In this document: in pieces, positions 42,644 to 64,000 of the stretch
How positions within the stretch are numbered: position 1 is the stretch's first letter
How the letters are laid out: each line of letters opens with the position of its first letter
Origin: Orbicella franksi
Lineage: Eukaryota
DNA: 64,000 nucleotides
Direction: 5' to 3'
Assembly: GCA_964199315.1 (NCBI GenBank)
Contig: OZ116700.1
Span: forward strand, 9,114,001-9,178,000
The notes under the pieces: model-generated
Told to the model about the DNA's origin: nothing
What the model saw: only the letters and a program-made list of their open reading frames with translations
Databases searched by the model: none
Translations under genes and position numbers: made by a program

Positions 42644-42789
42644 NNNNNNNNNNNNNNNNNNNNNNNNNNNNNNNNNNNNNNNNNNNNNNNNNNNNNNNNN
42701 NNNNNNNNNNNNNNNNNNNNNNNNNNNNNNNNNNNNNNNNNNNNNNNNNNNNNNNNNNNNNNNNNNNNNNNNNNNNNNNNNNNNNNNNN
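42644..42789. other. Assembly gap (146 N)
   Basis: Run of n characters. Confidence 1.
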
Positions 42790-45779: not shown

Positions 45780-48700
45780 TTAGTCAGGTCCAAATTCGTT
45801 GACGAGGAAATGATACATGAAACGTGCTTTCTTCTGGGTCAGCTGATTGACATTTCTCTTGCTAAGGCCTGCCTCCTTCTTTTTCGGTGCTCTCAAGAAC
45901 AGGGTACCAAATAAGGTGGCTGCAGTCAATAAAACAGCTTGTTAGAGATAAAACATGATTGACCATGGATACTTAATGGTCATACAATTCCTCTGTGGGT
46001 AACAATGGGAATAACGTCGATTTTCCAGTTAGGTTAATAAAGCACAGTCATTGAGGGCTCTGAGGAGAAGCAAGGTAATGAATAAGTGGGTTTATGCATG
46101 CGAGGGAGTATAGGTGCGCGCGAGAGCGCGTGCCTGCGAGCAAGTAGAACGATTTGTAAACTGATGAAAATGATTCGACTTACCCAGAGTTTTGGCGTCC
46201 AGTTTATTATCGTTAGAGTGCAGTAACAGCTCTCTCAGGAATGAACTAATATACGTAAACACATTCTGGTGGCTTTGAGGCATCTGGAATATCAACTGCA
46301 AGTGAAAAAACATACATGAGAAAATGACAGAAACTTGTCTGTACCAACTTTAAAGAAACTACCTGAACACCCACCAACAACATGCAATATCAGACAATGT
46401 TTTGACAACAAGAGAGGCCACACGGCCAAAAGCAGTACAGTCGAACCTGTTCACAACGGCCACCTTGGGGACGAAAAAGTGACCATTGATCAACTGGCCG
46501 CTGTCGAGGGGTTATTTTAGCAGTTGGGGCGCGCTTTAGTGGCCAATGCCGTTGTGGAGAGGTTAAAATAGAAGTGAGTGTATGGGCCTTCCGCCGGGAC
46601 AAAAAAGTGGCTGTTGTAGAGAGGTGGTCGCTAGTGCAGGTTTAACCCTAGTTACAATAAGTAGGAATTCTAAGTCAGTTTCATCTCCTTTGTCATTCAG
46701 GCCTTGAATCTTCTTTACACAAGCCATAATGCATGGCTCCCGCATATATACCTTTTTAAAGAACAAATTTCTTGTTCATACATTTGTTTCGAGAAGTAAT
46801 TTGTTTTGCTTTACTACGCTACACAATTGGCTTAAAAGACACGCTACTTTTTCATCCAATCAGAAGTAAAAACCAAAGCCCATCGCGACTCGCTCGCACA
46901 CGTTTTCCTGCGCTTCGCGTCAAGTACAAGCATTTAATTTACTTCTTATTTTGGTTTTGGTCTTACCACACGCAATTGGAAGCCGCTCTGAAGATTAAGT
47001 TGGTGAAATCACTTCGAGTGGGGTATGGGGCTGACAAAAAAAAAACAACAATAACAGCAACAACAACAAAATCGGTCAGCGATTAGCCAGTTGAGGGCAG
47101 TCTGGTAAGGAACATCTCGCAGGAGACGAAACTCGTCCTATAAAAAAACTAGGAACCCTAGTGAAATGCCGAGTCATGTCAAATCTTACCTGTTTGCAAA
47201 GCATGTAGTTATTGCAGCACTCAAGAGCTCTCTGGTAAAATGCATAAGGAATCACGGGTTCAGGTAAGGCTTCTAGAAAAATAAGTAAAGCTTCTGCTAC
47301 GGAGTAAATACTGCCAGCTTGGAACACGTCAAGGAACTATAACCACATCATGTTAGGTGCAATAAAACGCGGATGGCAAAATGGCTTTGTGGTTATATGA
47401 TCATTTTTGGGGATATTTAGAATTACCCTCAAATCAAAGGAAGCCACTAAATAATACCACAGAAGGGGCGTTAAGACTGGAACTTGCTACAGAAAAAAAA
47501 ATATGGGGAGGAGTACAAAACCCGGCAAAACAGACGGTAATACAAAATTTCGATTCTTTTAATAAGGCGACGTGAACAGCGAGGCCTAGTGGCTAAGGCG
47601 GTGCACTTGTAGCCCCCCCTCTGCCACTGGCCCGCCTACACTAGCACTAGCTATCCGCGGGCCAGTCTAATTTAAAAAAAATGTAAATTGAGGAACGAGA
47701 ATAAAGATTGCTTCCTTACATTAGCCTTCAAATGTTTGTAGTTAATTGTGTTTGGTAGAATCAAGACATACTAAATGTGACATTCCTGAAACAAGATAAA
47801 ACAATTGGAAAAAGTGGGCATGAAATTACAAGTAAAAACACCAGAAGGATACGCAGTTTACCACCACGGCAACAATCTAAATGTGTTCTGATCGCTTCCA
47901 AATCTCTCTCAAATCCAGACTGCCTGAGAATGTTCTCCTGAAGGGAAACCAAGAGTAGTATGTTAGCAAGATTGTCTTACGTGCTCCATCGTGTAGCACT
48001 CACGATTTGTCTCACCTGGCGCATGCCAAAGTTGAATAAGTGATCTGTTAGAAGCCACAGCTCTTTGGGAATTTCCAGTGGATGGGAATCTGATGAAGCT
48101 GAGGGATTTGATGAGTCGATATGCTCCTAATAGAAGGGAAAGAAGACAAATTAAGGTTTCTTTCTGAGAAATGCAACTATAGTAATATATATATTTTATT
48201 AGATGTTTTAGTGTGTAGTATCGCTGTATATTTTTACGAGTTGTGCCGTACTTTGACGAGCCCGTAGGGCGAGTCAAAATACAAACAACGAGTAAAAATA
48301 CACAGGGATGCTGCACACCAAAACATGCAATAAGAGATTTATTATCCAACTGCTGTATTCAATAAATTTATCAATGAAAGAGGGAGAGTGTGACAGTTTA
48401 GCGTGCGCGCGCCGACCTGTACGGCAAACAGGTTTTCTACTGGACAAATATGGCAAACAGGTTTTCTACTGTACAATATCGCTGTATATTTGTACTGTTA
48501 TTTGGACGGTATTCGGTGCAGTTGGATAATAAGGCAATTTACCGCACCCAAATTCGCAAGTAGTCAATCGGAAGCCGTCCTGATATCCTGCGATATCAAG
48601 TAATTGATCTGATATCGCTAGATATCATGCTCACTTGGTCCAATTTGGGTGCGGTAAATACCTTTTTTGGTACGCGTCGGAGCTGGCATATCAGGCGAGT

Positions 48701-51700
48701 TTGGTATCACCATGGGCATTTTGACTCGACTACGTCTCGCTAAAATACGAATCATGGCTCGATCAAATTCGCCTGATATGCCGCCGAAGCATACCAAAAA
48801 GGTACAATTAGGTAATAATAGTTAAATGGAAACTAAACTCACCAAGTTTACAAGAGTTGCAACAGGAACTTCTCTGATAGGTCCGTACATGCGTACCAAC
48901 GCTTCAATAGATGAACCGAAAACACTTGGGAGATAGTTACCGCTGACCGACACCTGTCTACCGTTAAGAAAATTACTGCAATATTGAAGGGAGCTATTTT
49001 CACTTAGCACAATATTACCACTGGAAGTAATATAATGTAAATACCTCTCAGGGGTTTCATTAAGGGCCGGGCACCGGGCAAACTGCCTGACCGTGAGGAT
49101 GATTTTCAGTGCCCCTCTGGTTTGACCATCTAGCGGAAGGTTTTTCTTATAAAGAAGTTCAGTTCTAATAGTTTTGCCTACGTGTGAAAACAAGTTGCCC
49201 TTCTGCTGAAAACGTTAATGAAACCCCTGATTATCACAGTAAGTAACTGTACCTGCAAAAAATTAACGTTTTTTGTCGCGCACCCAGCTCTTGGAAATTC
49301 GACAGTGATGATTCCATAGATAATTAGTCTGTGATCTTCCTTAGGGCTGCGTTTTCAGTATCGAAGTGCTCATCTTGAAGACAGCAGACTCGATATTCGT
49401 AATTTGTTGTAAGTTATAAGTATTGCAATGTTAGTAATGAACTATAGGTAATGCAAGACATGCAGTGAAAAAAAAAAACTAAATAAAATTAATAAGTAGA
49501 CTATGTAGCAACGTAGGAAGACACTTCTAGGTCTTTCCTAAAGAACATGTGACTACTCCAAAAAGGGTCAGCGAAGGAGGTTATAGATTTGTGAATTCCA
49601 AGGATATAAAAAAGTCTTTTCCACCCTCCAAGTGAAGAACGAGAATATCTTCAAGTTTCTCGTCTCCAGAATTCATGGTTCTTGACGATTCTTTATCAAC
49701 GTACACAGTCAGACGAACATGTTTGGTGCCTCCTGCCAGGACAAAGAACAAAGACTGTAAAACTACTCAAAAACAAGATCACGACACTTCTAATCTATTC
49801 CTTTTGAATCCAAGCTATAGACTACAGCTTTAACTTCAATCTCTTATTTCCATCGTTCATGAAAAGAGACGATAATTAAGTAAATTGACACAATCATGTG
49901 CGTCCAACTGCAATCTTTATCCCGGGTGGTAATCCTTACAATTACTCTCTGGATATGTTACCTGTTGTTATAATCCCCATACATGGTTTGACAGTCAACC
50001 AAGGCTTACAGTATTCAGTATCATCTAATTTAGCTATGAAAGCAAACCGAACTGGTACCTGTCAATCAATCAAACAGTCATCAATCACATAACCAAACCC
50101 AAGTTTCAAAATACACAGAAAATGGTAAAAAGACAAAAAATAACCCTTAGTAGAGTACCTATGACTATTTGCACAGTCATCCCATAATCGAGTATCAGGC
50201 AGGGGCGTAGCCAGAGGGGGGTGGTCCCTAAGGGTCCACCCCCCTCGCCCTTTTCTGGTGAAATGTTTGTTTTAGTAAAAAGCAGCCCTGAATAAGTTTG
50301 CTGAGTTTCGCAGTTAATGAAAGCATGATAATAGCCTTTACGAGATGTTGGGAAGAGAGAGAAAGAACGGATGGAGGGTAAGAGTGACGTACAGGTAAGA
50401 ACTGTATTTACAAATTAGAATTGGTCCAAACAAAGAGGTAAGTGCTGATATCCAGTTCAAACCAAAATACTCACCTGACCAGTGTTTACAATTTCCAAAG
50501 TGGCTGTCTGTTTTTCACGAAACTGGACATCTTTAAAAATAATCTACATAGAACAAGAAAAAAATAATCACAAACTTGGGGCTGGAGTTGTGATGTTCAA
50601 CCAAGCTCTCAGAGCTAAAATTCAAATAATTGTGTTGTAATGTGGAATGAGAATCAACATGTTGAGCTTGAAATAATAAAGGTTGACAAGTTTCCAATCC
50701 ACTATATGTGCAATACCTCTGTGGTACCCAGTTGGACTTGGGGCAGGTTTTCATTTTCTTTTCTGTCAAGTTTTCGTATGACATCTTCCATAACTTGTCT
50801 TTCTTGCTCCACATTTACAACTCTGACCTGTAAGTAGCAGTTGTTGGAGGTGAGCAGTAAAATCACATGCACGCAAAGACACTTCTAATATACATGTGGT
50901 GGTGGCTTATTCCTCAATGTACAGTAGTTGTAGACACTGTGACTTTTATTCTTATAGCCTATTCTGGGCTCCACTCTGTATCTGGTATAACCAACATTAT
51001 TATATGGATTGTGTTTGTAGTCGCTATAAATAAGGCACACTCTGATTGGCTAACTCTAGGGCATTATTATCTGTAATGCCCATCAGCCGATTGCGAGCCT
51101 GCAAAAACAAAGCAGAACGCCATATAATAAACTACTTCTTAACCTCGAACATTTGGTCTTTACAGGAAAATCTTAAACCTCAGTCTTGCTGTAAAATGGC
51201 AAGGTCTTGGTTTGAGATTTTCCCAGTCCTGACTCTTGCTTAATAAGTAGTTAAAACTGAATAAAAATGCCTTTGAATAGAAAACAAGGGAAAAAAGAAA
51301 GTAAGGTAACATATCTTGAGGTTCTAAATTATTATTATTTTATCCTGTCTAGGATTTTGAGGCCACACATTGAATCCATTTCTGACACTTAATGAGACAT
51401 AAAAGCATGAAATCGTAAAAATCTTATCTCACAATTCGTTTTTACTTGTTAAGAAAGCTTTTGGCAACCTTGTATGTAAAATATAAAATATCTTTAATGT
51501 AATTATCCCATGCCTATCATACATGGATCAAAACGCACTGTCTTGTTTTACAGACTTGAAAGCAAATAAAACATTATTTGTTGAGTTAAAGCATTATCAA
51601 TGCTTGTGACAGTAGAATAGAGCCTTGTGTATCACTTTTAGACTTTGAAAGGTCCCCACCCTCTCTATCCCACAAAATTGGGAATGCCTCTTTACAATGC

Positions 51701-54700
51701 ATCTAGAAGGGAGTGCATGAAGGGAGGCAGGTTTTAATACTGGTGCCTGGGTTACACTTACCCCAACTTCAAACAAGGCGCTGACAGGTTTATGGTCACT
51801 TATTTTTAGTTTATTATGGCTACGATATTCCAGCTGGTTGACTTGAGATCCTGTCCATAAAATACGATCACACCAGGCAGGGGCTCGACCTTTTTCGCTA
51901 AAAATAAAAAAATTCAAAAAAATCCAAAAATGTCTCAATATAGTACTCAGTGATCCAGACCTGCTTTCATTGTGACTGAAATGAAATCTACATTCATTAA
52001 ACCTTGCTGGCACATTTCTAGCAGTAATAAACAATCTCTCCCTTTGTGTACTAAGTCCTTCCTCAGCTAGAGGAACATCCAAGAATGATTCAATCTGAAA
52101 AATTCCACCTGATGATTAAGGACTATAGAGGTCCATGAAGAGTCAATGATTGCTTTTCACTTGCACTCACAAATTTAATACCACAAAAAAAAAAAGTCCT
52201 AAACACTGAACAGATGAAAACTTTCAGGCCTAGTTTGATCTGTATTAAACAAATTTTATACTGCTTCCATAAGAACTCTCTTGTCCATACAATCTTGTGC
52301 TTATATGGTTAAAACGTAAATGAGCAATATTCTGAGTGGCTCTTTTACACTTTGAAAGTGCATAAAGCAAAACCACATTGAGCTAATTTCCTCTACATGT
52401 GTGTTAGACAACCTTGTACTGATCAAATCCAATAGTAAAGTAATCACTGAGTTGACCCAACATTCTTAGGTTAAAGAAGTTCTATTTGAGCACTGCTTGT
52501 TATTAAAAAGCGACATCATCTATGCACAACCCTGTCATGTTAATAATAAAATCACCTTGTGTCCCAATTATCTGTTCCTGGATCGTATTTGTAAGTTGGT
52601 TTGAACTTGATGCTGCCTTCTTTAAAACCTTTAAAGCATTTCCTTTCTTTTTGTTGTTTGATGAGTTGATCATTGGCTAGGAGTTCTTCATACTGCCCTT
52701 TATCTGCCAATCTTCTCACGAGATCTGTATCCATGTCACTGATCCTGTAATTTAAGTCTCCTAACCAGAACACAGCCCTGACAGAGAGAGGATGTTTTGA
52801 TTATGTGAAACTCTGGAGACAAGCTATGTGTTTAACAAAATACATATATTCATGAAATGTGGCCAAATGTAATTTAGGCACAGTTTGAGTCGAGCCAATG
52901 CTGGCCAGCAGTCTCACAGGGTGACCATGCTCTGTGGGGTCTTATACGGAGTTTTGCAGGTATTATGTGTTTTTCTTGCCAGCTGTTTGTCTTGAGTGCC
53001 ATTTGTGCTTGTAGCCTGCTTTTGCTCCCTCCCCTCCCTCCCTTTCACTGGCGATGGTATGTATATGGGGTGGTAAGTATCTCCACTGAATCTATCAGTG
53101 TGACAGCGCCTGGTGGTTGCCACTCTCAGAGTTGCCATGGATACCTGCGTGCTCTACTTGAGGCTCATATCTCGGCTCCACCTTTCCCAAGCTCATCAAT
53201 TGGCGATTCATCAGTTTAATATTACATATAACTTACTCATGATCAGTGATTGAAAATGAACCATAGGACCCATTAAACTCCAGCTTGCTTAGAATATCTC
53301 TGTAGTCCTGTTGGTTGGAACAAATTATCGTCATTGATTTTTATTCAAGATAAAGATATACCCCTAATATCTTTCAGTTAAGAAATCCAAATCTAGTAAT
53401 ACCCAGTCATTATGATTGTCGAGCGACGGTAGACTCATAGGAAGGGCACTTACTTCCAGATTGAGCAGTCTGGATTTGAGGCCTGGCCAGAGAAACTGCA
53501 TTGTGTTCTTGGGCAAGACACTTAACTCTCACAGTGCCCCTCCCAACCCAAGTGTTTAAATGGGTAGTGGCGGATTTTAATTAATTCTGGGGAGTAGCCC
53601 TGTGATGGACTACCATTCCATCCAAGGAGGAGTAACACTCCTAGTACTTTATGCTATAGAAACCAGAGATAAGCACCAGCCTGATAGGCCAGTTGACGCA
53701 CATGCAGACTTTACTTTCACATGTGGTCTCATCTACAATCATGGACAAATTGTGTTGGAAAAGGCCAAAAACATGAAATCATAATCGTAATGCCTACAGA
53801 ATACGTGTTGACACCCCCATTCCCCCTTCCAATGTTGGAAAATGGTTAATTGCAAACTTGTGTCAGATGAAAGTGTTTTGTCAACATTGCACAGGGTTGG
53901 GAAGCGGCAAAATGTGTATAGATTGATTTTTTTCCAACCCTTGTGACCAAGTTTGTAGCTGCCAGTAATAATTATAATTAATACCGACAGTACTAGTCTC
54001 AGCTGGCAATCAATAACCAAATTTACCCACATCCTCCAAAATCATGTGGTTAGACAGTTGTGTGTAAGGAGATGAGATGTGTCTATGAAGCTTCAAGAGC
54101 AACCAGGTGTGTGGGAAATCTATTGACATCTAAGTGCAATAATTCTTTAGAAAATAGCCCAAAGAAAATACATGCACTGATGGGTTTAAAAATCATACAT
54201 CCTTAACTCGATAGAAACAGAACTAGCACAAGCTGTTGAGTTAAGATGGCCCTAGTAAGGAGAATTTACAGTTTGATGATCAAAGTAAACAAGCTGTTTT
54301 CTTTTTTTGTCACAGAATTTTCATAAAGAACTGGAAAACTTGTTTTCCGTGTTTCTAATATCGAGTTTTAGTATAAATCTACTAGCGTTCTATCACAACT
54401 GCCGTTCTCTGATTGGTTATGCTACTTGTTATCTATTCTTTGATAGATAGTGAGTAGTGTGGCAGTGTGCCCTTGTTAACAAAATGATGTCTGCTTCTTG
54501 ACATTTTCGAAGTGTCTGTGAAGAGGATTTAGATAAAGTTTTGAATGACTAGTAGATTTATACTAAAACAATTAAATTATTGCCTCTCGATTTCTATGTG
54601 TGATAGTTGACTCGAGCTGTACCCTCGTCAACTATCACATGATAGAAATCTTGTCTGAGCTCATAATCGAATTGTTTAATAGAAACACTTGTGGAAGTTT

Positions 54701-57700
54701 GAGAGAATTTGAAAACACTGTGGAAACACTTGCCTGTTTAATCACGTTCTCACAGCATTTCTCGTTCTCCCAATTAACTTCCACTTGTGTTTCTATAGCT
54801 CAATACTGAAACACGGCATACATTTTCAATTTCTTAAATATTATACTTAGCATCACTATACCTGGTTTCTCCTCTCAAACTCCTCTGTATGAGCTGCAAG
54901 ATGGGAGTTTACAAAACAAATACTTGTGTTGTGAATCTGCATTCTGATGGCCACACCTCCTTTGTTACCCTGTTTAGAACCAAAGTGTAGCTAATGAACA
55001 CAACAATTAAGGGCCTGTTTACAGGGAGGGTTACCCTAGCAAACGGGTTAACCCTAGCTGGAGGGCAAAAGATAGCCTGGGCTTACAAGCAAATTTTCAC
55101 AGGTTGGGTAACCCTACAACCCAGGACAACTTAATGTGCAGTTACACTCAAAGGGTCTGGAAATAAGTAGAAAGTAAACTGTTAACTCGGGTAAGCGGGT
55201 TAACCCTACCTGGACTGTTTACAAGAGAAAAAGTTAACCCGCCTGCCAGGGTAGCCCTGGCACACAGATAGGGTAACTTGCCTACCCAGGTAACCCTGGC
55301 CGCTTTGTAAACATGACGAAGAAAAATGAGGAAATGTGTGAGTGCTAGGGTAACCCGCTTGTGAGGGTAACCCTCTCTCCTTGTAAACAGGCCCTAAGAT
55401 CTAAATAATACATTACTATATAATCTTGCAAAGGTTTTCTGTACCCGACAATGCACTGTTCAGGCCTGGAACCAAGCAAAATCATTGGCTGTTTGCCATC
55501 ACCATAGAAACTCTGATGCAAAGTCCAATGATATATTAATTTTTAGTACTTAATAATGTGAAATCTGCTAATTTCTTTTCAATTTTTACATTGTATAATA
55601 ATTTAATTAACAAACTTGCAACTTTACTATTAATAGTAGAGACTGACCTGTCTGGTTTATGCACATATTTGTACAGCTGTACATTCCCACTCTTATTTTC
55701 TTTATTCATTTATAAAGATACTAATATTAAAAACTGGATCAATGCAGATAAATGAGGGAATTCAATGGTTTTCATTGGCTTAGCCTTCATGGTATATGAG
55801 CCATTATACCATGCTTTGCAAATATGGGAAGTGTAATTGTAACTCTTTTAGGTGTTTTAACTTTAATTTATTTTACTTCTATTCAGTTTTCTATATTTGG
55901 GGGCACTTTTAATAAAACAGTTATGGTATCATAATTCTTATTCCACATGTGCTTGTTGAATATGAGATGGTTAATAGTTAACTCGTGTCCAATGCATGCT
56001 TGTGTAATAATTGTTAAATAATTTATCAAGTGTTACAATATGTCATCAGGATAAATAAAATGCAAGACTTGCAAGTAAAAACTCCTCAGATCCTTACCAT
56101 AAGACCCATGATGCCAGTAGCTACAGTTTCAGCATCAACTTCAGTGACATAATGCTGATACTGGCTCTTGACAAAAACCATCAATAAGATGCCCACCAGA
56201 CGAATGGTCTTCACCTGGAGAAGTGCAAACAAATGACAAATTTTCAACACATGAAAGCCAAAGGGGTGGAGGGGGGGGGGGGGAATACAAACTTTAATTT
56301 AGAGAATCTGATGTGAACAGTCATTAAACATTGTCGTTGGGTTTCTCTATGTTGTCTACATTACTTTGTAGCTTCTTAACCTCAAAACAAAATAGACAAC
56401 GCAATGCCCCTTAAAAAAGTACTTTTGCCATAACCTTAGTGTACTGGGCTTTAGGGTGGAGTCCTCGCTCAGCAATCTTTAGCCACTCATCTTCTTTTGG
56501 AGTAACATTTTTCAGCAATGTCTCAGCACTGAGGTCAAGCTCCTGAAAACTAAATAAACAAAACCAGTATTGGAAATTAGCGCTTGCCCGCTCACCAATG
56601 TGAGTGCGAAGAGTGTCGGGTGAGTACAAATTATTGACCACTCGCCCGTTTGGCGAGTACATAATACTGATAACACTCCTTTTTATTTTCCATTTTATCT
56701 CTAAACCAAAACTTCCAGGTGCTTTTTTCACCTTTTTTATCTTTTTAGCTGCTCAACTAATTTGCCAATAATAAAACACAACTTAGTGTTTCATAAAATA
56801 ATAGACAAAATGAAATATGGCTTCCTTGTAGTGACGCATCTTTCTGGGCGAGTGAAAGTAACACTGGGTGAGTGCAGTTTCAGAGTCACTCACCCGAATG
56901 GCGAGTGCTGTGAAAATTTAGTTTCCAGCTCTGCAAAACACCCTTCTGTAAGTTGTCTTGTAAAGTGGAACCCCACCTTATGGTAGGTCACCTTTTTATT
57001 ATGGTCACTTCTTTCTTCTGGCAAAACACCCAAAATTTTCTTGTAAGAAAATCCTGTTAATGCAGCCACCTCCTTAACACTCCAATGGCCACATTCTGAA
57101 ATCCCAACCTGTATATTATTATTTTACCCTGTTTACATATATGGCACTCTAACCAGTCATGTTACTCTTTCCATAGATCCTTTGCCTAAATGGCGTCTAA
57201 ATTTGAATAACAATAATTTATACATCCTTAGCCTCATACTCATGTTTCAAGACAAAGGATTTTTTCACATGAATGTGAGGCTAAGGGTATATACGTATTG
57301 TTATTCAAATATAGGCACCATTTATGCAAAGGGTCTACTGTTAATAATATATTGTAAGTATGTATTAATTGAAGTTGATGGTTCAATTTTTCTTTAAATT
57401 ATTTCCACATTCCCGATGCTTATTAAAGAACAGTTGCATAGAAGTACAATTGTGATAATATTTACTCAATTTAGACCAGTCATGAAATTTGACCCTAGGT
57501 CCTTAATAGGACCACCCCATTAATATGGCATGAATGTGGCATTAATATGGCATTAATATGGCCAAATTTTCATGGCCCTTTGGCTCCAAGTGGCTTATGA
57601 AAAGAAAATGTCTCACCCCAGACTGAACACATCAGGTGGATCTTGATCAACAGCAAGCCAAGGTGCCACATTCTCTGCAGGAGTCTGGCCATTGACATTC

Positions 57701-60700
57701 CATGTTCCAACAAAGATTCTACATTAATACACACATTTAATTATAACATGAGGCAAGTTGTCAATAGCCATATATGGTTGACTGTGGAATAATTTATAAC
57801 CTAGAGTCACACTAAGCTCTCAATGTGTACTTGTAAAGGTCTACAGCTAAACAGCCCTCTCTGTGAACATAACTCTTGTACATTGAACACATATTGAATA
57901 CTTATGCCTTCCTTGTTTTTGCTGTTTGTTAGTTGGTAGTTTTCTGAGAAACGATATATCTAGCCACAAGATATGAAGTTGTGTCTGTATAAATAGTCTG
58001 GCTTATTCTTTTTCTTTCATCTACACTGTAGTATGTTTTGCTTGCACAAGTGTTACTAACCACTTTTTGCACAGTGCCAACAAGGCAAGAATGTCATTTA
58101 TCAGGAAAAATTCATTTTGGATGAAAGAATTTCTCTCCACATGTTTTACAACTCAACACTTTAGCTCCTGCATTGCCAAATGTGCTCATTCTGACATGAC
58201 TTGTCTGTTACTGTGTACATGTAGGTATACCTTACAGTTACTTTGCCTTCAAGATATTTGTTACTTTAGTTTGTGTTTAGAAACTTGTTACACTGGACAG
58301 ATGACCCCTGGGGGAACCCCCATATAAAATGGGCAGTGTGCTCGTTGGAAATTTTGAAAAGAACCCCTAAGCGGTACCAAGATCCAGTTTTGTGGGCATG
58401 GCTTGCACTTTTTTTAAACCCTCAGGGTACCAATTCTAAAGCAACACATAACCTCCTGTTGAGCTTTTTCTTTTGGCTCAATACCCAAAAGGCACCACAA
58501 ACACTCCCACTGTCAACCTTTTGAGGCTGAATATGTACCCTTAAAAGGTATTACAAGCACCCCTATCCTTTTCATATGGGTGTCACCACCCCCCCTCCCC
58601 CACTCCCCCCCCCCCGGATGTAACTCACTTCAGCTTTTTGATATGAGTGTATTCCGATTCTCTTGTAGCCATGTGCAGTTTAATAAATCCATCCCTGGCA
58701 CTAACGCTTGTTGGCAGGATAGACCTCCTGGGTAGTGCAGGTGAGTCAGTACTGCACTTCTCTACTTCATCAGAGGCAGTTAGACTCGCTGACGACAGTG
58801 ATGGGTGTATGGTGGGTGAAGGAGAAAAACCTGGCATTCCAAAGACATCTAATGATGCATCGTCTGGTTTGGATTCTGAGGCTAGTAAAACAATAATTCA
58901 AATAACAAGATGTTGATGCTACCACACACAGACATTCCCAAAAGACATCAAATTTCTTAAATTTCTTAAACAAGGAAATCATAACCACCACCATCATCAT
59001 CATCAGATGGAGATTTCCTCAACTGATATATTCTGGTAGTTTCAAATTGTTATGTGGCAGAGATTTTGATTTCATCCCTCAAATTTAAACGCTTTGCTGG
59101 ACATTGCATTTTCAACTCTCACGGCCCTTCATGCTTTTTATGTACTACATGAAACAAGCTCAATTTGTTGGACTTTCTTAGAGATAATAATTATTATAAT
59201 TGCTAGCATTGCAAATAATCCAACTCCAAATTTTATGCAGTAAAGGGCAGAGGAAGAGGTGTTCCACTAAGTTTGCTATTTCTAACTTTTTGTTTACTAA
59301 GTTCAAAATTCCTCTTTGTATATTTTACCTGTTACAACTTCTGATCCACTTGAGCTTGCTACTTCTAGGTGATCCCAAGGCCAGCCATCTGTTTGAATCA
59401 GTGACTGAGTAATTAGTTAGTTATATGGGTTATTGACCAAGCGTGAGGTCAAGATGGTTGGATATGGTGTGTTTATGGACCGAGATGGAGTCAAGGTCTG
59501 TAAATCCATATCCAGCTGAACAAGTTCAGTCAACACTGTTTTCTTGTGGGACACAGTGGGTAATCCAAAGCTGGCAAGATAGCGCAATTTTGCTCGCTTG
59601 GGTAGCCAATCGAAGCACCGGATTCAGTTCACCTTGCCTGCTCACTGAGCTAGACATTTTAGTGATAAAAAAACTTATTGACTTCAGATGTTGTGGGACT
59701 GCAACACTCATTAGCCCTAGTGAACATTTTTCCAGGATCTTCAAACTTTAAAGGACATTTGAGCACCATCTTGAGGATATGGAGAATCTTGGTAAGATCC
59801 ATGCAGAAATCTCAATCTTTCAGAAATTGTTACTTGAGTCTTCAAAATTTTCTGGACCAAAGTACTCAAGGACATTGGTTGACGTCTTTGTAGTAAGATC
59901 CTTGTCTTGGCTAGGGAGGACCTTTTAAGACTCAGAGTACACCTTACAGTGATACTTACCTATGCTTATGAAACTTTTTCTTCCAATCAACTGCTGATAT
60001 TTTTCTAGCCACTTGAATTCAGGCACACCAACCATGTGAGCCCTTTGTCGATAAGCTTTACAGGTAAACAAACAAAAACTTTTATCAGTAATAACCTATT
60101 AAAACAGACAGGGTTACAAAAGGGATGTGGTGAGAAAGAAAAGGCAAGGAACCAATTGAGACTCAGATTTTAAGGAGAAAGTGGAGGTGGTAAGGTCACA
60201 TCTTAAGGAAACAGGCTAACAACATCACCCAACAGGCACTAAAATGGAACCCTCTGGGTAAGAGGAAGAAGGATCACCCAAGGAACTCCTGGAGAAGGGG
60301 TGTGGAGTCTGAAATGAGGAAGTGGGGCCACACCTGGAACATACTAGGAAGGCTTGCCCAGGACAGAAGCTGATGGAGAACGGATGTGGTCAATGGTCTT
60401 AAGTATGCTCCAGCTGAAGCTGAGGGACAAATCAATCACCTTATTGAAACCACAACCAGAGTATTGAAACCCCTTACTCTGGAATTGTTGTAGCTAAATA
60501 TCTGTCACTATTAATAAGAAATTCAAACCAGTTCAAATGCTACTAATAATACTGAAAGAAGTGGCATCACCTCCAATGGCTTTATTCAATTCAACCAAGA
60601 AATTATTTCCTTGAGTATCCTTCTTCAACTCAAAGACAAGCTTTGTCTGGTCGTCAGTCAGGATTTGAAACCGTACTACACCTATAATAGAAATGCATAT

Positions 60701-62559
60701 TATACAGTCACTTTATTTTAAAAGCAAATTTTTATTGTGCATGATATCTGACTCAATTTGCATAACTGCTGATTTTGCATTCCAATATTGCTGCAATTAT
60801 CGGTGTATCTTTCTAATTAAGATTTTTGTATTGCAGCTAATAAAAATTATACATATCTTGGGTGAGTTTATGGACAATGCTATGATGATATTTAATTTAA
60901 TAAAATTAATTAATAAGTTTCTTTAAAAAATTTACATGAACAGCATATTAATTGATATAGGATGTTGCAACATGCCAAGTATTACTAGTTAACAAGAAAA
61001 AAAATGATAATTGTAATGATAATTTTTTTTAAACTATTGACTGTCAATTCATTGTTTACCCTCTTTGTCGTTACTTTCATCAGCTGGTTGATCTTTACAT
61101 ACAAAAAATATAAAAAAAACCAAAACATTTGAATATTAGTAAGATAGACTACAACCTATTATTTTAATGTTACTTTCTGGCTGGGAAGCCCATATAGTGA
61201 GAAACCATGACCTTGGAAGGTCTTGGAAATGCTGCCCAAGGCTGCAAGCCAAGGACAGCATTTTCAAGTCCAAGGTTGCAGTTTTTCACTTTACAGACTG
61301 ACCCTACGCTGGTAAATAACTTATTTATTTTTTCCTCTCTCTCAAATCTTTTCTAATTGTTGACCTTTTCCACAACACAATGTGCCTATGTGTTACCGTT
61401 AAACCATGGTCAGAGATAGGAAAATCTGAACTGCCCTAAGAAACAATCAGATTGGAGGATTTGTTACTGAAATGAGTGACAACATGAGAGTAAACATGTG
61501 TGTGTTACCTAGCAACACAACAAACTGTCACACTGTCACACTTTGACCTCAGCCAGGGATCAAACAAGGATGACTTGACCTGGAAGAGGTGCACTGAGAG
61601 CCAGCCGATCACCTTCCCTCTTACATTACATTGTACATTATTATATTATACTTTTTTATACACAAACAAATATCTCAAACACATGACTTGTATATGATTG
61701 TCAAAATATGTTGTTACTAACATTTCTCTGCCAAGTGTACAAAATTGAAGTTAAGTACCAACTAACTCGAAAGATTTTAAAAGAAATGTGGACACTACAT
61801 GACCTCAAGATAAAATAAGCGTGAACACATACCAGCCACAGTTGCGTACGAAAAAGGTCCACGGATGGCCAAAACATACAGGACCTCTAAATACTTTTCT
61901 TGAAAAGATGATTCACCCATCCACTGAAAGATGATCAACCTGTTAAAATAAGTGGTGAGTGTGTGAATTTTATTAAATGCAGATCAGAATTTACATGTGG
62001 TAACTGATGAATGGATGGGGAAATATATACATTGCATTGGATACAAAAGGTAATTAAGTCAATTTTTAATTAATTAATATGTATTTTATAACAATGATTT
62101 TCTCAGAATTAAATTGAAAATGTTTTTTCCAGGGAATATTTTTACACACCATACACTAAGTTCTTGAATTATTTACAAACAAGCAATCTGAAAGATACTT
62201 TAGTCTTAAAATTAATCAACGTTGTCAGGGTTTGAAAAGAACTTGAATTCCAGCTTGCCCTTGGGACAAGCAGCTCTCAAATTTTGCTTGTCCTTAGCAA
62301 GTCTTAGTTTGCTCTTCTAGTAGTTTAGTTGACACAAGATTTGCCTGATCCCTGGGAATGAAATGTTACATGTACTTGCCAAGAAGGAAAATCTACTTGT
62401 CCCAAATGTCCAGATGGCACTGTGCCCTGCTGTTGTATTGTTCACTTAAACATAAGCTTAAAGTCTTGTATACACCAAAAATTAAGTACCCAGTATCCAG
62501 AGTTCTTGTTATGAGAGAAATGAGGCAGCCAACTTTGTTGTGATCCTTTAACAGAACTC
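45780..62559 (-). CDS. OCRL: OCRL/INPP5B-family inositol polyphosphate 5-phosphatase (PH, 5-phosphatase, ASH, RhoGAP); 23 coding exons recovered, 5' exon(s) not located
   Basis: Exons in transcript order: 62490-62559, 61833-61939, 60571-60681, 59960-60055, 59329-59388, 58629-58881, 57617-57718, 56435-56549, 56098-56214, 54862-54969, 53237-53307, 52556-52777, 51762-51897, 50717-50827, 50475-50543, 49962-50058, 49608-49732, 48843-48953, 48016-48126, 47853-47937, 47190-47317, 46184-46295, 45780-45919. All phases are compatible and the frame is open (2657 nt, about 884 aa plus the missing N-terminus). Motifs: [110 protein letters not shown]. Confidence 0.96.
46436..46650. mobile_element. Tc1/mariner-type MITE remnant in an OCRL intron
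   Basis: TACAGTCGAACCTGTTCACAACGGCCACCT ... AGAGGTGGTCGCTAGTGCAGGTTTAAC. Confidence 0.55.
47318..47852 (-). other. U12-type intron with GT-AG termini in the OCRL-like gene
   Basis: 5' splice site |GTATCCTTC, branch site TTCCTTGAC (47328-47336) 11 nt from the AG, and no polypyrimidine tract. The splice gives GKL|[11 protein letters not shown]. Confidence 0.88.
48537..48804. mobile_element. Two abutting small MITEs in an OCRL intron
   Basis: A perfect 18-bp TIR pair ATTTACCGCACCCAAATT (48537-48554 / 48642-48659), immediately followed by a second element TACCTTTTTTGGTA..CATATCAGGCGAGTTTG / CAAATTCGCCTGATATG..TACCAAAAAGGTA (48659-48804). Confidence 0.7.
48954..49607 (-). other. U12-type (minor spliceosome) intron with AT-AG termini in the OCRL-like gene
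   Basis: 5' splice site |ATATCCTTG (minus strand from 49607), branch site TTCTTAAC (48963-48970), 3' end ..GGTAGACAG|. This splice gives KDFF|VSVSGNYLP, colinear with human OCRL KDYFLTISGNYLP. No GT donor is present at this junction. Confidence 0.85.
53418..53715 (+). mobile_element. tRNA-derived SINE, older copy of the 32639-32935 family, in an OCRL intron
   Basis: CTTGGGCAAGACACTTAACTCTCACAGTGCC..CCCTGTGATGGACTA..CATCCAAGG..AGAAACCAGAGATAAG body. Confidence 0.75.
55011..55394. mobile_element. PIF/Harbinger-type MITE in an OCRL intron
   Basis: TIRs GGGCCTGTTTACA / TGTAAACAGGCCC, TAA target-site duplication on both sides, and internal GGGTAACCCT repeats. Confidence 0.85.
60128..60425 (+). 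mobile_element. 5'-truncated RTE-clade LINE remnant, antisense to OCRL
   Basis: Translation [61 protein letters not shown] matches the RTE ORF C-terminus; it contains in-frame stops. Confidence 0.85.
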
Positions 62560-64000
62560 CTGTAGTGCAGTATGAACCGTTAAGGAAATAAATAAGCAAT
62601 ACAAAACTATTTTGCCCACAAGTATATATCTCAAAGGCAAACTTTGGAGAGTAACGCTATAAACCTTGGCCTTATATTTACTCTTTCTCTTTGCTTTTTT
62701 TGGGTTCTTTCTCTCCTTCTTACTTTGCTGGTTTTTGGATGGAGAAAAAGAGGGGGATGGCCTTATTATTTAAAACTGTATCAGGTCAAAAAATGTTCCT
62801 GATCCCTAAAGTAAAGAAAAAGTACTAACCGACTCAATAATATTTAATGAAAATAATTTTCATTTAATTCCCAGTCCTGCATTCATGCATAAATAAATCA
62901 TCATAAAAGTGGACAGCCTTCAATTACAAAGCTACTTACATGTAACAAATAGATTCCATGTTGTTCAGTAATACTGTAGATCACAGATGATGTCATTATA
63001 AACAACTAGGTAAGAACAGAAAAATGGCTTGGAGGCGACAGCTGAGTGTATCACTGCTGTTCTTACCACATTTTAATAACCTTCTGTGATCTATTAGTGA
63101 AAAGAAGCAAGGCAACATGGAATCTACTTGACCTGGTTTTATAATAATACCCAGAAACAAAAAACGAAGGTTAATGGCCTTGTCTATGTGTCTGTCCACC
63201 AATAGATCATAAGTAAGAACCAATCAACATGTGAGAATAATTTGACTTATCATATAAAAACCAATACTTCATGAAAATTTAACAATTTGGCATTGAGCCC
63301 TGTATATGGTATTAAATAAATTAACAGAAGAATTTGCAACATATTAATTATAGATGTCCCCCTTCTGTTCACTCACTACGGGAATATATATTAAAATGTC
63401 TTTTACAGGCAAACAAAGACAAAAAATAACTCGATATCAGTATCCACAGGCTGTCGTACTTTATTATATATTATAAATTATAAATTGGTCAGAAATGATA
63501 AACAGGAACAAAATTAGACACTAAAAGTTTTGCATTGATCTGAGTAGCTGCGCATCTTGCAATAATTGTACGCAAATTTCAGCTGTGTTTTTCATGGTGT
63601 CATCTGATATGCAAACAATCGTTTCCCTGTCAAATCTCGCTTAGTGAGGAATAACACCATATTTCCTGCCGGACGCAAAATTGTTCCGCCTTCAAATTGG
63701 CCATATATCATCGAGCAAGCGAGCGCTGCTGTCGGTGTTGAACAGTAGTATAAGTTATCCACGGAGTTCTAATGATAGCTGATCCCAGTGTCACCTCAAC
63801 AAAATTAATACACTGAGTTCTGCGATGTTATGGAATTTTCTTCACAGAGAATAATAAAAATAACTTTAAATACAAGCGCAGTTTCTCTAACATAACAGTC
63901 CCAAGCTATCGAATTATTTCGCAGCTGAAGCCGTTGAAGCAATACTAAATTAGAAATAAAATATTACGAAAAGGATATTTTAATGCACTTCTCCTCACTT

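Follow-up and report, generated by a model that had tools for sequence, protein, structure and literature searches.

Minor (U12-type) introns that begin with AT and end with AG are a known rare subclass, of which human has 11 and mouse 8 (PMC1557818). One view sees them as intermediates in the switching of minor introns between subtypes, and as possibly inefficient (PMC3584512), and they are grouped with AT-AC, AT-AA and AT-AT introns as A-type (AT-AN) introns (PMC8280824). In animals the base directly before the terminal AG of AT-AG minor introns tends to be a C; corals are rich in minor introns, and Orbicella was included in a pan-eukaryotic survey (bioRxiv 10.1101/2022.09.24.509304). The two human genes most relevant to the present locus each contain two minor introns: an AT-AG intron near the 5' end of the gene and a GT-AG intron in INPP5B, and a GT-AT intron near the 5' end of the gene and a GT-AG intron in OCRL (PMC8280824 supplement).

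The locus described here is an OCRL/INPP5B-like gene on the minus strand of a 64,000-nt stretch of coral DNA, referred to below as the window. Its exons matched the proteins P0080, P0018 and P0305 over their whole length, with PH, 5-phosphatase, ASH and RhoGAP regions, and the orthologues carry PF16776, PF22669, PF21310 and PF00620. The window protein was 98.6% identical over 211 residues to the OCRL-1-like protein of Orbicella faveolata (P0301). The start codon of the gene lies 35 nt past the window end: exon 1 (MDLVERVQKELSSEEKCIK) extends from 64035 to 63979, running 35 nt beyond the window (L077), and exon 2 starts at 62569. The gene contains three minor introns of three terminal types, AT-AC, AT-AG and GT-AG. 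We are highly confident that the intron in the ASH-domain region is a genuine minor-spliceosome (U12-type) AT-AG intron, with the mechanism and history set out below. The features of the gene are the following.

45789..64000, minus strand: OCRL/INPP5B-like inositol polyphosphate 5-phosphatase gene (tblastn of P0080, P0018 and P0305)
62570..63978, minus strand: PH-domain minor intron, first in the gene, phase 0, AT-AC; starts ATATCCTTTT, has TTCCTTAAC at 62587-62579 and ends AC (sequence; coral transcript-derived proteins)
49608..49732, minus strand: upstream exon (ASH domain), ending ...LEGGKDFF, followed by a phase 0 intron (RNA joints 49731/49961, cut +1, and 48953/49608; translation; orthologue alignment)
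48954..49607, minus strand: U12-type AT-AG intron, 654 nt (RNA joint; same termini in L015, L026 and L027)
49599..49607, minus strand: 5' splice site ATATCCTTG, opening with eight bases identical to the U12 box ATATCCTT (sequence)
48963..48970, minus strand: branch-site box TTCTTAAC (sequence; pairing with U12 snRNA; conserved in L015, L021 and L023)
48956..48957, minus strand: unused AC, 2 nt upstream of the AG (RNA without such a joint; AC also in L023)
48954..48955, minus strand: AG 3' terminus, used (RNA joint and in-frame product)
48843..48953, minus strand: downstream exon, from VSVSGNY... to ...ATLVNL (RNA joints, translation, orthologue alignment)
47318..47852, minus strand: RhoGAP-domain minor intron, phase 1, U12-type GT-AG; starts GTATCCTTC, has TTCCTTGAC at 47336-47328, then 10 nt and AG (RNA and sequence)

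Elsewhere in the window there was a run of 146 N at 42644-42789, which is either a gap or a masked stretch.

Two raw poly(A) RNA runs, and two further runs in the form of Logan transcript contigs, were compared with positions 47200-50200 of the window; the runs carry coded organism labels and may come from close relatives rather than the same species. A joint 48953->49608 was found in three of them (X23, X1 and X5) with a positional ambiguity of 0. It skips exactly 654 nt, the ends of which are CT..AT on the plus strand, or AT..AG on the strand of the gene, and the termini that define the AT-AG subclass are in other words shown by transcripts. In X23 the joint was crossed by 4 raw reads with 4 distinct starts, which is thin raw-read support; X1 and X5 each contributed a single contig with the joint, at depths of 42.8 and 56.6. 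Both contigs extend across the neighbouring GT-AG junctions 49733-49961, 48127-48842 and 47938-48015. The joint of the RhoGAP intron, 47317->47853, was likewise seen in X23, X1 and X5 with an ambiguity of 0. For the PH-domain intron, the coral transcript-derived proteins P0305 and P0318 join exons 1 and 2.

On the minus strand, the 3' end of the exon at 49608 reads GGT GGA AAA GAC TTT TTT, and the exon from 48953 opens with GTG TCG GTC AGC GGT AAC TAT, which encodes VSVSGNY. The confirmed exons, when joined, form one open frame. Their product, with GGKDFF/VSVSGNY at the junction, aligns without gaps to OCRL/INPP5B proteins of a sponge, anemones, corals, a nemertean, amphioxus and a hemichordate, as well as those of mussel, brachiopod, horseshoe crab, priapulid, starfish and fish.

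The same reads gave some indication of how well the intron is removed. X23 had 4 spliced reads at the AT-AG junction, compared with 4-6 at adjacent U2-type junctions, and about one read at most in the repeat-free bins of the intron. The AT-AG intron thus looks efficiently removed at steady state, at a depth too low for a number. Logan RNA contigs also span U2-type introns unspliced; this is likely to reflect pre-mRNA or DNA carry-over. Both long introns contain repeat-like segments (48190-48610 and 49020-49320 in the window), where the depth of RNA contigs reached the thousands and many had loose ends. These segments are probably transposon-derived sequence expressed from many loci.

If the first base of the intron were in truth a G, miscalled in sequencing or assembly, the intron would be an ordinary GT-AG U12-type intron, and the close relatives L023 and L024 do have a G at that base. 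However, the A was also present in an independent assembly of Orbicella faveolata (L015) and in two JGI metagenome contigs (L026 and L027), as well as in L025, L021, L022 and five separate open reading frame fragments, and no base difference at 49607 was listed among the RNA comparisons. The intron in L015, which runs ATATCCTTGG … TTTTCTTAACGGTAGACAG/GTG, was 97.9% identical to that of the window, which must thus stem from Orbicella or a very close relative. Judged by these sequences, the A at +1 is not an assembly error, and we give a miscalled base next to no probability.

The sequence of the intron is that of the minor class at both ends. ATATCCTTG directly adjoins the last exon base set by RNA, so that the /RTATCCTT box stands at the exact position expected of a U12-type 5' splice site. 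This motif is not rare in itself, with 6 matches in the window where 4.4 are expected by chance, and the match at 49607 is taken as real because of its position and the RNA, not because of its rarity. Three of the other matches were set aside as chance occurrences: at 884 and 17264, both on the minus strand, every frame is closed by a stop codon shortly upstream of the match, and the one at 60615 on the plus strand is antisense, inside a coding exon. At the other end of the intron, TTCTTAAC differs from the consensus TCCTTAAC only by C>U, a departure that still permits a U-G wobble with U12. The last A of TTCTTAAC is at 48964, 10 nt from the last intron base, giving a distance from branch A to intron end of 10-11 nt, within the range of about 10-15 nt that is characteristic of U12-type introns. 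The tail GGTAGACAG is purine-rich and has no strong polypyrimidine tract.

The genome also encodes the machinery for removing such an intron. Genes for all four minor-spliceosome RNAs scored above the Rfam cut-offs: two for U12 (100 and 94 bits, the cut-off being 53), two for U11 (90 and 88 bits), two for U6atac (113 and 111 bits) and one for U4atac (54 bits). The U12 copies keep GTAAGGAA, the partner of the branch box, and the U6atac copies keep AAGGA, the partner of TCCTT. In human, CENATAC is the factor on which A-type (AT-AN) minor introns specifically depend, and a homologue of CCDC84/CENATAC was found in the coral genome as three colinear exons.

The motifs, together with the orthologous introns described below, suggest that the intron is removed by the minor spliceosome and that its branch point lies at TTCTTAAC. 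U2-dependent AT-AC introns do exist (PMC1557818), which leaves room for the idea that the major (U2) spliceosome removes this intron as a non-canonical AT-AG one. That idea is extremely improbable here: the 5' end is a perfect U12 box rather than the U2-type form, a U12 branch box lies 10-11 nt from an end with no real polypyrimidine tract, and in the orthologous intron U12 boxes are retained from sponge through anemone.

All of the sequence statements in a first-pass annotation, which had called an AT-AG U12-type intron with these motifs at 48954-49607, were correct. It had named the AG as the acceptor in use, and this was borne out by the split RNA joint 49608/48953, the alternative 49608/48955 not being among the joints listed. 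A different GT donor or acceptor, or a G as first base, had been named as findings that would speak against the call; both were looked for, and the RNA gave AT..AG, and L015, L026 and L027 gave A.

The intron tail after TTCTTAAC reads GGTAGAC, followed by the AG at 48955-48954, and the AC that it contains led the first-pass annotation to two further suggestions. One was a tunable switch between productive splicing and nonsense-mediated decay, in which use of the AG gives the productive mRNA and use of the AC, 2 nt upstream, gives a +2 frameshift and a degraded transcript. The AC is present, and the choice of 3' splice site in U12-type introns is known to be error-prone (PMC3584512). However, no read or contig used the AC: among the joints from the four RNA runs none led to 48955 or 48957, a result that bears weakly on the matter, as read depth was low, decay would hide the products and Logan contigs drop rare variants. 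The branch A is also some 8 nt away from the AC, short of the 11-13 nt reported as the optimal distance between branch and 3' splice site (PMC3584512). Such a switch is very unlikely, although at this depth rare use of the AC or another acceptor could go unseen.

The other suggestion was that an AT-AC intron had been caught in mid-conversion, and this depends on the termini that the intron has in other species. For annotated orthologues, the exact exon-intron structure was mapped onto each locus, the cnidarian homologues being obtained with an alignment seeded by coral exons. A homologue search with the arthropod-like P0018 returned no cnidarians, and the contigs found to encode the catalytic-exon fragments P0001 and P0003 were short ones without ASH exons. 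At the ASH site, the sponge Sycon ciliatum has a U12-type AT-AC intron (ATATCCTC … TTTCCTTAGC … AC) at the same codon boundary, and the anemone Actinia tenebrosa has a U12-type GT-AG intron (GTATCCTTAG … GCCTTGAT … AG). In amphioxus, fish OCRL and fish INPP5B the intron is absent and the exons are fused. The orthologous intron has U12 boxes at this phase 0 site in Sycon, Actinia, several corals and unidentified metazoan contigs, and its presence in the sponge makes the intron position appear ancient. Over all of these animals, the ASH intron would be AT-AC in the sponge, GT-AG in most cnidarians and, within a single robust-coral clade, AT-AG or AT-AA, with a loss in chordates.

The other two minor introns of the gene were compared in the same animals. 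At the RhoGAP site, all of the mapped genes (those of Actinia, Sycon and amphioxus, and both OCRL and INPP5B of fish) have a U12-type GT-AG intron, as do human OCRL and INPP5B (PMC8280824 supplement). For the PH-domain intron, the AT-AC termini of the coral recur in Sycon, Actinia and amphioxus, and fish OCRL has GT-AG. In fish INPP5B (L017:558-1006) it is apparently GT-AT (GTATCCTC…ATCCTTAGC…AT), a non-canonical type also listed for human OCRL. The AT-AG intron of human INPP5B and the GT-AT intron of human OCRL are the orthologues of the coral PH-domain AT-AC intron. The termini at this position are AT-AC (sponge, anemone, coral, amphioxus), AT-AG (human INPP5B), GT-AT (human OCRL and, apparently, fish INPP5B) and GT-AG (fish OCRL).

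Corals were sampled more densely with a query made of the exon open reading frame extended into the intron, so that the first nine intron bases could be read off from the three codons following KDFF. ISL (ATATCCTTG) was found in five coral fragments, all with the GGTK signature shared with the window, one of which matches an Oculina exon exactly. VSL or VSF (GTATCCTT.) was carried by over 13 fragments from corals and by others that are anemone-like. Metagenome contigs gave both ends of the intron in several cases. In L023 the intron is GT-AG (GTATCCTTGGAATTCAC … TTTTTCTTAACACAAGACAG/), with ends clearly homologous to those of the window intron, and a spliced cDNA of the same species (L028) confirms the KDFF/VSVSGNY junction. 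The intron starts with GT in L024, is GT-AG in L029, and starts with AT in L025. Two contigs of a related coral in ENA assembly ERZ26858540 (L021:4133-5292 and L022:4133-5287) read ATATCCTTGG … TTTTCTTAACAGTAGACAA/GTA TCT GTC, and from the frame and the conservation of the protein their intron is predicted to be AT-AA.

A tree of codon nucleotides, built from about 430 nt with Actinia as outgroup, grouped the window with Orbicella (98) and L021 with L025 (84), and joined these two pairs with a bootstrap of 60%, the value for monophyly of the AT-type corals; L023 and L024 (95) were their sister, followed by L029. A protein tree of ~250 residues, contaminated by intron read-through, was unresolved and split the AT-type corals. 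In every topology the outgroups to the AT-type corals were GT. As the node of the AT clade is weak, a single origin of AT and repeated toggling between G and A both fit the sequences. Since the outgroups are GT-AG under any arrangement, the fewest steps are needed if +1 changed from G to A in a robust-coral lineage. The direction of change, read from the tree, would most likely have been from GT-AG to AT-AG. The simplest history for the L021-type branch would add a further G>A at the last base, producing AT-AA.

These relationships bear directly on the suggestion that the coral intron is an AT-AC minor intron halfway to GT-AG, its 3' C already a G and its 5' A unchanged. The sponge AT-AC intron at the same site, the AC 2 nt upstream of the AG, and the proposal that AT-AG is an intermediate of AT-AC to GT-AG switching (PMC1557818; PMC3584512) all fit such a conversion. 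On the other hand, the closest non-AT corals (L023, L024 and L029), many other corals and the anemone are GT-AG, with the AT clade nested among them, and the sister coral appears to have moved on to AT-AA, not GT-AG. L023, a GT-AG relative, has the AC in front of its AG too (..AAGACAG/), and the AC is therefore older than the AT state and not a vestigial terminus. A mid-conversion from AT-AC is unlikely, and a change from GT-AG to AT-AG is the reading retained here.

The mechanism proposed for this intron is that of the minor spliceosome. U11, and then U6atac, would recognise the ATATCCTT box, U12 would pair with TTCTTAAC, and the 3' cut would be set by distance from the branch A, with the AG at 10-11 nt downstream, near the 11-13 nt optimum (PMC3584512), being used and the AC at about 8 nt being too close. 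The resulting mRNA would be in frame and encode the conserved GGKDFF/VSVSGNY. In the history that goes with this mechanism, an intron at an ancient position would have been GT-AG in Hexacorallia, and AT-AG would have come about through a change of its first base from G to A in one robust-coral clade, made up of the genome of the window, Orbicella, an Oculina-like coral and others. The last base of the intron in a sister coral may then have drifted to give AT-AA, which fits the known tolerance of A-type (AT-AN) introns for any 3' base. A broader reading, to which we would give an even chance, is that OCRL/INPP5B genes have three ancient minor introns, two of which have repeatedly changed subtype across animals, with the coral switch going from G-type to A-type, the "wrong" way. 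If this is true, the switch moves the intron into the CENATAC-dependent class and leaves its 3' base free to drift.

The introns of this gene also have consequences for annotation, as coral gene models must allow AT-AC and AT-AG introns. The first-pass annotation had expected gene predictors restricted to GT-AG to fail at the ASH-domain intron. This is so only in part: the NCBI Orbicella model P0301 already has the KDFF/VSVSGNY junction, but it is without the N-terminal exons on either side of the AT-AC intron of the same gene and has no PH-domain Pfam hit. A separate model, P0322 from Desmophyllum pertusum, is without KLP at the RhoGAP minor-intron junction 47853/47317 (CCRGA---GS), which looks like a mis-called splice site at that intron.

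The coral locus provides a clean, RNA-verified AT-AG minor intron outside vertebrates, with close relatives that are GT-AG and AT-AA at the same site. It is thus a natural series for studying how the termini of minor introns switch, and for asking if AT-AG, a supposedly inefficient state, is able to last. Compared with the described members of the AT-AG subclass (Sheth et al. 2006, PMC1557818; de Wolf et al. 2021, PMC8280824), the intron has the same ATATCCTT box and an TCCTTAAC-like branch box ~10 nt from the 3' end; its AG is preceded by C, it is in phase 0, and it lies in a gene with other minor introns. There is no difference in kind: this is a cnidarian example, with orthologues elsewhere that are GT-AG, AT-AA and AT-AC.

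The comparison of termini with other cnidarians and with human OCRL/INPP5B, which the first-pass annotation had proposed, yielded these GT-AG, AT-AA and AT-AC orthologues and also placed the nearest human case. The AT-AG intron of human and mouse INPP5B (PMC1557818 Table 3; PMC8280824) shares both gene family and rare termini with the coral intron. However, by its position in the 5' part of the gene and its flanking codons it is the PH-domain intron, matching the coral AT-AC intron at 62570-63978, and it is therefore not an orthologue of the coral ASH-domain AT-AG intron. Human and mouse XPO4, ACTR10 and SCN10A, in which orthologous minor introns are AT-AG in one case and GT-AG in the other (PMC1557818), are similar in that a single base at +1 makes the difference. 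They differ in that the tree allows the coral switch to be located among stony corals, where it appears to run from GT-AG to AT-AG, with AT-AA in a sister lineage. The coral intron is a well-supported further case of a known rare class and involves no new mechanism; what it adds is modest, namely AT-AC, GT-AG, AT-AG and AT-AA termini at one orthologous site and three differently ended minor introns in one gene.
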